From contig NC_042998.1 in assembly GCF_006345805.1 (NCBI RefSeq), positions 138,818,001 to 138,882,000 on the forward strand: DNA of 64,000 nt, read 5' to 3'. A model generated the notes under the pieces. That model was not told where the DNA came from, did not search any database, and saw nothing but the letters and a program-made list of their open reading frames with translations. This document shows, piece after piece, positions 22,499 through 61,590 of the stretch. How positions within the stretch are numbered: the first letter of the stretch is position 1; each line of letters begins with the position of its first letter. The stretch is from Octopus sinensis (lineage: Eukaryota). The position numbers and the translations under genes are program-made.

Positions 22499-22550
22499 AT
22501 GAAACAATATACAGTATTTGGACTGGTAATCTTATGTATAGGAATTGAAG
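22499..22550 (+). CDS. Gene B first coding exon, signal peptide (MKQYTVFGLVILCIGIE-)
   Basis: ATG, hydrophobic 17-mer, strong phase-1 donor GAAG|GTAAGA. Confidence 0.72.
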
Positions 22551-22849
22551 GTAAGAAAAACTGTTGTTAATGATTATATTTAATTCGTTTCGACTCGGTT
22601 TCAAATTTATTTATTGATAAACTCTTGCACCATTAATTAACACAATGTTATTAATATTTAGTAATTATTTTAGTTAAATATTTTTTATCACAGTTTTTCT
22701 TTGTTTAGTTTTGATTTGTTCCATGATGTCTGTAGAAACAGATGACATAAAAATAGTTAACCATTACCCTCACCCTTTCATTAGTTTGTTTTCTGTGCTC
22801 ATGGAACCAAGAGCACGCATAAACATCCTCTCAACATTTCCACCCTTTT

Positions 22850-23755
22850 TTTTTACCCAGCTGGGGCGAGAAAGAGAGCTGCACCAGTACTAAGCTGTTA
22901 CTCATTTTCAGCTGAGTAAACTGGAACAGCTTTAAATGAAGTACATTGTTCAGACACAACCCTTTGCCTGGTACAGGCAAGGATCATATGGCATTATGAT
23001 CGCGGAAACGTAAAAGAGTTGAGTTCAAATCTACAATGGATAAGTTTGCTTCTCATTATTTCAAAGTCGGAAAATTAAGTATTTGTCATTGATTCGTGAC
23101 TTCGTGCTAATATTAGAAATCAGTATTTTTTTTTGTTACAAATGAATGATAATGATAATGACAATAATAATCCCGAAAGGAGGAGAGGTAAAATCAACCT
23201 CAACGGAATTTGAACTCAGAACGCAGAAACGGGCGACATACTGCTAAGCATTTGATCCAGCGTGCTAACGATTCTGCCAGCTCGCCGCCTTCATAATAAT
23301 AATATAATAATCCTTTCTACTATAGGCACAAGGCCTGAAATTTGGGGGAGGGTGTAGTCGATTACATCGAACCAAGTACTCCACAAGTACTTAATTTATC
23401 GACCCCGAGAGGATAAAATGCAAAGTCGACCTCGGCTGAATTTGAACCTAGAACGTGAAGATAGGCAAAATGCCGCTAAACATTTCATTCGGGGAGCAAA
23501 CGATTCTGCCAGCTCGCTGCCTTAATAATATTAATAATAACGGTTTCAGATTTTGCCATAAGGTCAGCAAATTTGGGGAAGACATGAGTCGATTGCATCG
23601 ACCCCACTGTTCAAGTGGTATTTATTTTATTGACCCCGAAAGGATGATATGTAAAGTCGACCTTGGCAGAATATGAATTCAGAACATAGTGACGAGTGAA
23701 ATATTACTAAGCATTTCGTCTTGTGGGTTAACGATTCTGTCAGCTCGCTACCTTC
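22850..23755 (-). mobile_element. SINE cluster: one family-2-like fragment and three head-to-tail family-3 copies
   Basis: TTTGAACTCAGAACG..CTAAGCATTT..TAACGATTCTGCCAGCTCGCC occurs three times (near 23210, 23440, 23675), each followed by (AAT)n. Confidence 0.8.
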
Positions 23756-23789
23756 ATAATAATAATAATAATAATAATAATAATAATAA

Positions 23790-60027: not shown

Positions 60028-60340
60028 GTTTAAATTAGTGGTTAGATCCTATTGTTATTCCACTCACTGTGAGAATGCATAAACAAAGCAGTGTGTTATT
60101 TTTAGCACTTTACACCTTGAATGGGCAATAATGTTTACACAACATCTCACCAATGTATTATGAGTGTAAAAATGTGTCGAAACAACTGTAGTGATTTCAA
60201 ATAAGGGATGTCGTTAATTCCATCTTTTTATCTTTTCTATCTATCTATCTATCTATCTATCTATCTATCTATCTATCTATCTATCTATCTATCTATCTAT
60301 CTATCTATCTATCTATCTATCTATCTATCTATCTATCTAT

Positions 60341-60896
60341 CGCCATGTTGATTCGTTAGTTACTGCACGCATTTTTTTTCTCTCCTTCTTTCTGTGTTTT
60401 TTCTCTCTGTGTATCTTTCTGTTGAAGAGCGTAGGCTCGAACGTTAAAGACTTGTTTTATTTATATTTCCTGAGCGCCATACTAATACAATTGTTTGTTT
60501 GTTTTCCACCTGCCTTCGTCTTTTGTCTATTTTCATAAAGCTTCCCGTTATCTATCTATCTATCTATCTATCTATATATCTATTATCTATCTATCTATCT
60601 ATCTATCTATCTATCATCTATCTATCTATCTATCTATCTATCTATCTATCTATCTATCTATCTATCTATCTATCTATCTATCTATCGCCATGTTGATTCG
60701 TTAGTTACTGCACGCATTTTTTTTCTCTCCTTCTTTCTGTGTTTTTTCTCTCTGTGTATCTTTCTGTTGAAGAGCGTAGGCTCGAAACGTTAAAGACTTG
60801 TTTTATTTATATTTCCTGAGCGCCATACTAATACAATTGTTTGTTTGTTTTCCACCTGCCTTCGTCTTTTGTCTATTTTCATAAAGCTTCCCGTTA
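60341..60896 (+). repeat. Two tandem ~210-bp units (period 345-346 bp) separated by (ATCT)n
   Basis: 60341-60550 and 60686-60896 differ by about one indel. Confidence 0.93.
60759..60796 (+). ncRNA. Minimal hammerhead-like motif with variant core CUGUUGA (second copy at 60414-60450)
   Basis: TCTTT CTGTTGA a GAGC-gtag-GCTC GAAA CG TT AAAGA. Palindromic ACGU stem III. Confidence 0.5.
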
Positions 60897-61518
60897 TCTA
60901 TCTATCTATCTATCTATCTATATATCTATCTATCTATCTATCTATCTATCTATCTATCTATCAATCAAAATGTTACAAATGGTACAAATTGAAACAAAAT
61001 GGCATTATATGTACATTTTGAAAATAAAAGCAATATTTTCGTTCTTTACTCTATTTCACTTTTATTAAACCTACAAATGTGCCAGGCTTTTTTGGTCGCA
61101 CACTGTATATATATATATATATATATATATATATATATATATACCGAAAAGCAACCTGTTGCCTGCTTCTTTTATTTATATACAAAAATATATATTGAAC
61201 TTTTATAAAAGTTCCTACCGTAATGGTTATATTTACATGCCGAAATCTACCCGTAAATAATTGTTGGGTTTTTTTAAAAACCATTAAAGCTATTATTTAC
61301 TCTTATTATATATATATATATACACAAGCATACATACATACATACACATTGATAATAAACAACAAGGTGGAACAGATGTTAGATTTATCTTTAAATATGA
61401 TAATCACTGCAACTCGTTAATATAATCAATCAATCAATCAATCAATATTAACGTCTTTTAAACACATTTATTATCATTTTTATTCGTTTCATTTCCATTC
61501 CTGTTTTGTTTTCAACAG

Positions 61519-61590
61519 ATAATCGAAAACATATATCTGGTACAATACTAACAAACCAAATGACCACCACAGATGATTCACTTACAACAG
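61519..61590 (+). CDS. Gene B 72-bp Ser/Thr exon (D-NRKHISGTILTNQMTTTDDSLTT-G)
   Basis: Acceptor tgttttgttttcaacAG, donor ACAG|GTATAT, phase 1-1. Homologous to the gene A 72-bp exons. Confidence 0.78.

Follow-up and report, generated by a model that had tools for sequence, protein, structure and literature searches.

The closest described counterparts of the gene considered here, which we call gene B, are octopus proteins that are all labelled uncharacterized or hypothetical, namely LOC115232490 of Octopus sinensis, LOC106869236 and LOC106869241 of Octopus bimaculoides, and the models P0001 and P0002 of Octopus vulgaris; gene B is like them in architecture, exon order and splice phases. The locus followed up lies in a 64,000-nucleotide stretch of O. 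sinensis DNA (NCBI RefSeq assembly GCF_006345805.1, contig NC_042998.1, positions 138,818,001 to 138,882,000, forward strand), hereafter the window, in which positions are counted from the first letter, and its upstream neighbour, gene A, is LOC115232490 itself. At the level of the protein domain, the nearest described systems are the F5/8C and CBM32 modules, which the globular domain of gene B resembles in its size of about 120-140 amino acids (aa), in the pattern xDxxxxTxW...WIxxxxxxxxxISRIxL and in a C-terminal L.EI.FxG strand. A bridge between an N-terminal and a C-terminal cysteine is typical of animal discoidin domains, and the gene B domain appears to be without such a bridge. It differs from the F5/8C and CBM32 modules further in that it obtains no hidden Markov model (HMM) score, and in that it would be borne on the mucin-like stalk of a small type I protein rather than by a receptor kinase or clotting factor. 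To the F-type lectins, for which a fucose motif, HX24RXDX4(R/K), and a calcium motif, h2DGx, have been described (Vasta et al., 2017, PMC5712786), the likeness is distant, concerns the N-terminal half of the domain (W..DL....Y.IS.I.IyhR) and comes by way of a protein of Nucella lapillus. DUF7402, a further family that bears on this locus, is without known function and is not matched by gene B's own domain.

Our conclusion, to which we assign a probability of about 0.72, is that gene B is a real gene with a structure defined by homology, and a tandem paralogue of gene A. It is an ordinary annotation gap, a further fast-evolving copy in a small family of uncharacterised octopod membrane proteins of type I, and not a new class of system. 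The initial annotation of the window had proposed that a long gene, split into several exons, encodes a secreted or membrane glycoprotein at this place, and this much is borne out, with no protein model from the gene's own genome in a collection of 5.8 billion proteins.

Exon structure of gene B

The window was compared with the O. vulgaris DNA that matches it (L001; chromosome OX597815.1, 74.67-74.74 Mb), which aligns at 97-99% identity, and with the O. vulgaris DNA of the gene A locus (L002); the two species diverged about 2.5 million years ago (PMC10700109). The gene A coding sequence assembled from L002 is a clean 383 aa in eight exons with canonical splice sites, in the order signal peptide (52 nt), three-cysteine CPQL module, two domain exons, APxxC cysteine exon, two Ser/Thr-rich stalk exons and transmembrane exon. 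The exons of gene B are collinear with these and in the same phases (signal peptide 0-1; CPQL 1-1; domain 1-0 and 0-1; APxxC 1-1; stalk 1-1), and those that we retain within the window are the following.

22499-22550, + strand: exon 1, ATG and signal peptide MKQYTVFGLVILCIGIE, ending in phase 1 at a GT donor
40411-40542, + strand: exon overlooked by the initial annotation, three-cysteine 'CPQL' module VQCPQLNNSILSMKLNTCKSLFFRSEDVKGLNCDENRFEGHYLK, phase 1-1, AG/GT boundaries
41963-42162, + strand: exon 4, N-terminal half of the putative galactose-binding-like domain (ARIKNC...KINTTE), phase 1-0
44650-44815, + strand: exon 5, C-terminal half of the same domain (TVFELMK...EILFFGF), phase 0-1
52216-52307, + strand: cassette exon 'APxxC...C...C', likewise overlooked, with homologues in gene A and in O. 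bimaculoides
53494-53568, + strand: exon 6, Thr-rich stalk DNPETGTATHHLRTTESFTVSPIT, phase 1-1
61519-61590, + strand: exon 7, Thr-rich stalk NRKHISGTILTNQMTTTDDSLTT, phase 1-1, part of P0001 and not the last exon

Aligned over their full length, the two gene products are 45% identical. Exon 1 and the signal-peptide exon of gene A are both 52 nt long and have 33 of the 52 bases in common, the last 10 nt and the donor being identical; between O. sinensis and O. vulgaris exon 1 is 100% identical. The CPQL exon, which is also identical to its O. vulgaris counterpart, matches O. bimaculoides XP_014770372.2 at E 7e-17 (tblastn). Exon 4 is homologous to an unannotated exon of gene A (L002 8317-8540; tblastn E 1.2e-10) and shows a single difference from O. 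vulgaris, which is synonymous. For exon 5, which also lies within the O. vulgaris model P0001, the match has an E value of 4e-8. Homology extends into the stalk, where exon 6 is 50% identical (E 9e-4) to its gene A counterpart, DQPEEMKTTADHLSTTESYSVPTIS, and exon 7 gives a weaker match (40% identity, E 0.1) to the gene A stalk exon at 4545-4619. No nucleotide-level copies of the stalk or domain exons were found elsewhere in the window by blastn, and the paralogy is visible at the protein level only.

The cassette exon is 114 nt long and intact in O. vulgaris (L001 44484-44597). In the window 22 bp of it, O. vulgaris CACTGTAAACGGCCAGCTCTAC, are missing at 52230, a deletion that shifts the frame and would give APATCSLNRRK followed by a stop if the exon were included; gene B is thus broken at this exon in the window genome, where no gene B protein is annotated. 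The deletion may be fixed or polymorphic, or may stem from an error in the assembly. The corresponding exon is skipped in O. bimaculoides RefSeq isoform X2 (P0011), so that an in-frame, exon-skipped gene B product is still possible in the window genome.

Seven exons had been proposed, all on the + strand, with AG/GT boundaries and phases that chain without a stop. These properties stand, as do exons 1, 4, 5, 6 and 7, which are backed by homology to gene A and by identical phases; exons 2 and 3 are doubtful, and homology gives eight or nine exons in all. The CPQL exon is in phase 1-1, and skipping it had left the chain unbroken, so that phase chaining alone is weak evidence at this locus. Nor does the gene end at 61590, as had been proposed, because the frame is still open there. 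In O. vulgaris, the only species in which we read it, the terminal exon lies further downstream at L001 ~61610-61894, a position about 5.4 kb beyond the window end and so outside the stretch of O. sinensis that the window covers. It is 66% identical to that of gene A and encodes a CxCxC motif, a charged segment, ATKISAPDER, a 22-residue transmembrane helix and a 10-residue tail before the stop.

Paralogy with gene A and the octopod family

The homologous stalk exons and identical exon phases confirm the earlier suggestion that gene B is a tandem paralogue of gene A. A lineage-expanded cluster of surface proteins, which had also been suggested, did not emerge, all searches together yielding two genes with three domain units. 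When the 122-aa domain of gene B was searched with phmmer against 1.84 billion representative sequences, three matches were obtained at E <= 1e-3. The best is O. bimaculoides LOC106869236 (XP_014770372.1; E 5.1e-16, query residues 2-122), the second is a Logan contig product that represents the unspliced exon 5 orthologue of another octopus, and the third is the Nucella lapillus protein, with its 31 FTP-like half-domains; a profile search additionally found O. sinensis LOC115232490 (662 aa). The 305-aa translation from the initial annotation has one database match, the 228-aa O. vulgaris hypothetical protein P0001, and P0001 used as a query leads to P0002, which is the O. vulgaris model of gene A located 11.9 kb upstream on the same chromosome, and to O. 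bimaculoides LOC106869241.

Existing models support the joining of the exons in two ways. The RefSeq models of O. sinensis and O. bimaculoides join the signal peptide to the CPQL module, the domain, (in some cases) the APxxC exon, the stalk and the transmembrane exon, and for gene B itself P0001 links exon 5 to the exon at 52 kb, to exon 7 and to the terminal transmembrane exon. A search of the literature on the LOC identifiers and on DUF7402 gave nothing relevant to function.

Gene B has one domain unit, against two for gene A in O. sinensis and O. bimaculoides. Its domain differs from that of gene A in the shortening of three loops and in the loss of the cysteines of RSGCWEQ and SKCEGR, which are a probable disulfide pair. 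Exon 5 has 54% amino acid identity to its orthologue in the octopus of Logan sample SRR11869391; for gene A, the comparison with O. bimaculoides gives 81-83%, the species pairs being different in the two cases. The number of CPQL-domain-stalk units between the signal peptide and transmembrane exons of gene A itself varies, being one in the O. vulgaris assembly and two, nearly identical, in O. sinensis P0010, and in O. bimaculoides the two units apparently lie in separate annotated loci, LOC106869236 and LOC106869241 (P0007 and P0008). The difference in gene A unit number may be a true variation in copy number, or else an artefact of assembly or annotation.

The globular domain

The initial annotation had read exons 4 and 5 as a divergent F-type lectin/F5-8C fold. 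Of this, the galactose-binding-like class (F5/8C, CBM32) is supported by way of the paralogue, and the F-type lectin part is not supported, with no F-type lectin motif, no above-threshold match to an HMM of that type and no such structure among the Foldseek matches. The paralogue domain, taken from O. bimaculoides XP_014770372.2, matches DUF7402 (PF24135) with 43.7 bits against a cutoff of 27 (E 3.7e-11, positions 30-131 of 133 in the profile), and this is its sole Pfam family above threshold. Just below threshold are F5_F8_type_C (PF00754), with 28.0 bits against a cutoff of 28.2 (E 2.6e-6), and the FTL-type F5_F8_type_C_2 (PF22633), with 25.7 bits against 27.8; NADase_transloc F5/8C follows at E 0.004, and all of the Pfam matches fall on one and the same stretch. 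The precomputed Pfam matches of the two-unit O. sinensis protein P0010 include PF00754. A place for gene B in DUF7402 would follow from its homology to the paralogue, its own sequence being below the reach of these profiles. On this footing a galactose-binding-like sandwich is reasonably supported by the sequence comparisons for the gene B domain.

The lack of a Pfam match for gene B itself and the poor quality of the structural models count against that assignment; the matches obtained with Foldseek and with the family profile are weak and agree with it. Neither the 305-aa gene B model nor its 122-aa domain nor the 166-aa segment of CPQL module plus domain matched any Pfam family at E <= 10. 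AlphaFold2, run on an alignment of eight close relatives (eight rows), gave all-beta models for the CPQL-plus-domain segment of gene B and for O. bimaculoides P0005, at mean predicted local distance difference test (pLDDT) scores of 40.1 and 37.9, respectively, both of which are unreliable. Searched with Foldseek against the PDB, neither low-pLDDT model had a match at E <= 1e-3. The top matches for both, at E ~0.01, are CBM32, F5/8C, DDR1 discoidin and chitosan-binding modules and the factor VIII C2 domain; for the model with a pLDDT of 40 they are 4uap, 4a42, 3nng, 4ag4 and 4zz5, all at E >= 0.009, with a TMq of 0.43 and a root-mean-square deviation of 2.9 over 114 columns for 4ag4. When the family profile was compared with PDB sequences, two CBM32 discoidin modules, 2rva and 4zz5, likewise came out best, with an E of 0.21 that is not significant.

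As had been noted from the sequence of gene B, the canonical fucose motif is absent, and this holds for both paralogues. In the hhalign register the position of the His is occupied by TTNK in gene A and is deleted in gene B; the Arg of the motif is kept (YQRS / FHRS), with no acidic residue after it and no closing basic residue. The calcium motif h2DGx is also missing, the corresponding residues being SYDSN in gene B and SYDSD in gene A, against VDGN in the FTP-like unit of Nucella. With the FTL-type profile PF22633, for which the paralogue stays below the cutoff, gene B gave no match at E <= 10, hhalign assigns a probability of 21% to the alignment of the family profile with the Nucella FTP-like unit, and no F-type lectin structure is among the top 50 Foldseek matches of the low-pLDDT models. 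The further idea that a domain without this motif has a novel ligand is speculation; the gene B domain, minus three loops and a cysteine pair, may bind nothing.

The Nucella lapillus protein (KAL8585202.1; P0004) is itself unusual, with 31 tandem N-terminal halves of an FTP/F5-8C-like domain in 2865 aa, followed by an EGF-like region and a transmembrane helix. Either the architecture is truly odd, or the model has been mis-assembled or mis-predicted.

Functional gene or pseudogene

The most serious alternative to a working gene is an unprocessed pseudogene; gene B would then be a tandem copy of gene A in decay, from which no working protein is made any longer. We consider this unlikely, although it retains appreciable weight, and several observations are in keeping with it. 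A conserved exon, that at 52 kb, has suffered a 22-bp frameshifting deletion, and the domain has undergone three loop deletions and has lost its cysteine pair, changes that are as compatible with decay as with remodelling; the domain also has no Pfam match. In exon 5 the ratio of nonsynonymous to synonymous substitution rates (dN/dS) is about 1.5 relative to the SRR11869391 octopus (for the gene A terminal exon it is 0.84 relative to the same sample). No protein from the gene's own genome annotation or from the Logan assemblies was found to span any gene B junction. All of these count against our reading of gene B as a real gene.

What favours a functional gene is, in the first place, the state of the exons. 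All eight of the homology-defined exons are open and have canonical splice sites in O. vulgaris, and in the window the cassette exon alone is not open; the cassette, as mentioned, is an exon that an O. bimaculoides RefSeq isoform skips. In a count over six core exons (697 nt), two positions differ between the window and O. vulgaris, both synonymously, which is below the background divergence of 1.0% at 22-64 kb (one-sided binomial p = 0.029); as a point on the other side, this test of conservation turns on those two substitutions only. The B lineage is, moreover, older than the split from the SRR11869391 octopus, a species about 19% diverged at neutral positions, and in the exon 5 orthologue of that species the acceptor, the donor and the open reading frame (ORF) are all kept, with an 18-nt indel that is in frame. 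Finally, both cysteines of the pair have gone, not one, and their loss looks coordinated. Taking both sides together, we prefer the reading of gene B as a real gene.

The acidic Ser/Thr-rich segments

Between the signal peptide and the domain, the initial annotation had included two further exons.

34066-34326, + strand: exon 2, doubtful, acidic and Ser/Thr-rich, 87 codons in an open frame, phase 1-1, AG/GT boundaries
35643-35879, + strand: exon 3, doubtful, a duplicate of exon 2, 79 codons, phase 1-1

The two form a tandem duplication (34091-34622 against 35644-36189, 88.5% identity). We treat them as doubtful parts of the protein, as they have no counterpart in the relatives, no sign of coding constraint, and a frameshift in the O. 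vulgaris copy of exon 3. No counterpart was found between the signal-peptide and CPQL exons of gene A or of the O. sinensis and O. bimaculoides RefSeq models, and the sequence was not found in any database protein. The dN/dS between exons 2 and 3 is about 1.05. In O. vulgaris exon 3 (L001 28122-28357) is 236 nt long; 2 bp have been deleted from it and 1 bp inserted, and all of its frames contain stops. Exon 2 differs between the window and O. vulgaris at three positions, all three nonsynonymous and none synonymous, its divergence being at the background level. Most likely, then, these segments are not constitutive coding exons.

That one or both are nevertheless real coding exons, constitutive or alternative, and extend the N-terminus of gene B, and of gene B alone, by 165 acidic, Ser/Thr-rich aa, is in our judgement doubtful. 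Such a role would agree with their AG/GT boundaries and phase 1-1 and with 87 and 79 codons left open while the other two frames are filled with stops, although all neighbouring exons are in phase 1-1 as well, which makes the fit of phase weak evidence, and the originally proposed chain closed despite the omission of a true exon. Exon 2 is open in O. vulgaris also, as against the broken exon 3 of that species. A dispersed repeat was considered as the source of the segment and ruled out within the approximately 110 kb examined, which is likewise in keeping with an exon. Diversifying selection could explain why the exon part of the duplicate has diverged by 9.3%, compared with 2.0% in the adjoining 199 nt of intron (Fisher p = 0.0015); a dN/dS near 1, the 3 : 0 count in exon 2 and the missing counterparts argue against coding exons. 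In a separate observation, the 3' end of exon 3 in O. vulgaris, the copy that is frameshifted, is identical to exon 2, and this suggests that gene conversion may have taken place.

Predicted product

On the homology-defined structure, the transcript would run from the signal peptide (22499) through the CPQL exon (40411), the first (41963) and second (44650) halves of the domain, the cassette exon (52216, broken in the window) where it is included, and the two stalk exons (53494 and 61519) to the terminal exon beyond the window. The product is predicted to be about 320-360 aa long, a membrane glycoprotein of type I with a cleavable signal peptide. Its hydrophobic N-terminal segment has a mean Kyte-Doolittle value of 2.8 and its C-terminal 22-residue helix one of 2.4; there are four N-X-S/T sequons, and Ser and Thr make up 37% of the stalk. 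At the membrane-distal tip of the stalk, which would be O-glycosylated, the protein would present the small cysteine module and a beta-sandwich of the discoidin/CBM32/DUF7402 type. The juxtamembrane CxCxC motif and charged helix may serve oligomerisation, possibly through disulfide links, and the transmembrane helix would be followed by a tail of about 10 residues, too short for signalling, the protein having no predicted signalling domain of its own. The protein would probably act in cell-surface recognition or adhesion, and its binding may have been lost; the putative binding site appears remodelled relative to gene A, with three loops and the cysteine pair gone, and the protein appears to evolve fast.

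It is tempting to go further and to regard gene B as a functional, octopod-specific surface receptor whose domain is under diversifying selection (dN/dS > 1, loop remodelling and coordinated loss of the disulfide) and has acquired a new, non-fucose ligand, for example in gamete, self/non-self or microbe recognition, with the acidic exons as a lineage-specific, copy-number-variable N-terminal extension that arose by duplication and gene conversion. As a whole, this proposal seems to us improbable.

Alternative starts

The O. vulgaris model P0001 begins at a different place, at an exon that has no part in the structure set out above.

17569-17619, + strand: first coding exon of P0001, MLAYYLMESKPSLRDQI, GT donor, identical in both species

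From here P0001 jumps 27 kb to exon 5 and leaves out half of the domain as well as the signal peptide and the CPQL exon. Were P0001 the true structure, gene B would start at 17569, splice directly to exon 5 and encode half a domain with no signal peptide, and we regard this as very improbable. The model is the EVidenceModeler consensus of a pipeline that used Iso-Seq and RNA-seq, and the 17569 exon has its GT donor and its identity between the species; the same pipeline, however, drew on ab initio predictions too (PMC10700109). A protein of this form would combine half a beta-sandwich with an extracellular-type stalk and have no signal peptide, and the model omits exon 1, the CPQL exon and exon 4, all of which match gene A in sequence, order and phase. 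P0002, the sister model for gene A, is demonstrably truncated at its N-terminus in the same manner. No homologue of the 17569-17619 exon was found in gene A or in the O. bimaculoides models, and we consider it probably a spurious or an alternative start. The first Helitron-like ORF (18163-18486) follows about 0.5 kb downstream of it, and the exon has the look of a filler start codon.

The ATG near 41920, which the initial annotation had itself named as a possible start of a separate gene, is ruled out on homology as the start of a gene, and a separate short gene there with MANITFVLFIYNFL as its signal peptide is almost certainly an illusion created by an in-frame ATG and a hydrophobic stretch directly upstream of exon 4 (ORF 41899-42375), given that MANITFVLFIYNFL is the translated polypyrimidine tract of the exon 4 acceptor, that gene A and the RefSeq models use the same AG, in phase 1, to begin the homologous exon and have a CPQL exon before it, and that the CPQL exon of gene B itself lies 1.4 kb upstream of exon 4.

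Implications for annotation

The value of gene B, read as a real gene, is chiefly for annotation, in that three independent annotations mishandle one small family of surface glycoproteins at a single octopus locus. The exons are short and are set within 50-kb loci filled with transposons. In O. vulgaris (EVidenceModeler) the true N-terminus of gene B is lost and gene A is truncated at its N-terminus, in O. bimaculoides (RefSeq) the equivalent of gene A is probably split over two loci, and for O. sinensis (RefSeq) the gene B protein was not found in the protein collection. The corrected model would be that of a type I membrane protein with a distal domain of carbohydrate-binding type. If it is expressed, it would add one more fast-evolving, lineage-restricted recognition molecule to those of cephalopods.

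Gene A and other features of the window

The last two exons of gene A are inside the window, at 4545-5736, and can be compared with P0010, which is isoform X2 of LOC115232490.

4545-4619, + strand: penultimate stalk exon of gene A, with 24 whole codons identical to O. sinensis P0010 by tblastn
5464-5736, + strand: terminal exon of gene A, with CxCxC motif, charged segment, ISAPDER motif, transmembrane helix, short tail and stop

The first aligned residue of the exon at 4545-4619 is from the codon split at the splice junction. The exon at 5464-5736 is identical to the C-terminus of P0010 (tblastn), including a Leu where O. vulgaris has Phe. An open stretch at 225-296 on the + strand, NKNSIFSTIIGNSMTTYSGSLKTG, shows a weak likeness to the stalk exon at 4545-4619 (37.5% identity, E 0.26), and gene A may have one more alternative stalk exon here.

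The window is AT-rich, with a GC content of 27-50% per 2-kb window, mostly 30-40%, and microsatellites and transposon fragments are abundant. Transposon remnants occupy the intergenic region and the introns, and the following ORFs and fragments were recorded.

813-2349, - strand: Tc5/pogo-like DDE transposase
9788-12559, - strand: reverse transcriptase ORF of the non-LTR (long terminal repeat) type, 714 aa, with a zf-RVT tail
18163-19700, + strand: PIF1-like helicase fragments of the Helitron type
28070-28813, - strand: second copy of the C-terminal region of the reverse transcriptase
31440-32966, - strand: reverse transcriptase fragments
46750-47814, + strand: unclassified ORF, 227 aa

A short dispersed repeat, with the translation ...KLLTTQP..., is present in many copies on both strands (e.g. 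7803-8072, 29956-30309, 42432-42740 and 53939-54394). It usually adjoins TA/CA microsatellites and is probably an octopus short interspersed element (SINE). At 60200-60900, just upstream of exon 7 of gene B, two minisatellite blocks of the TCTATCTA type (translation LSIYLSIY...) flank a duplicated unit of about 350 bp.

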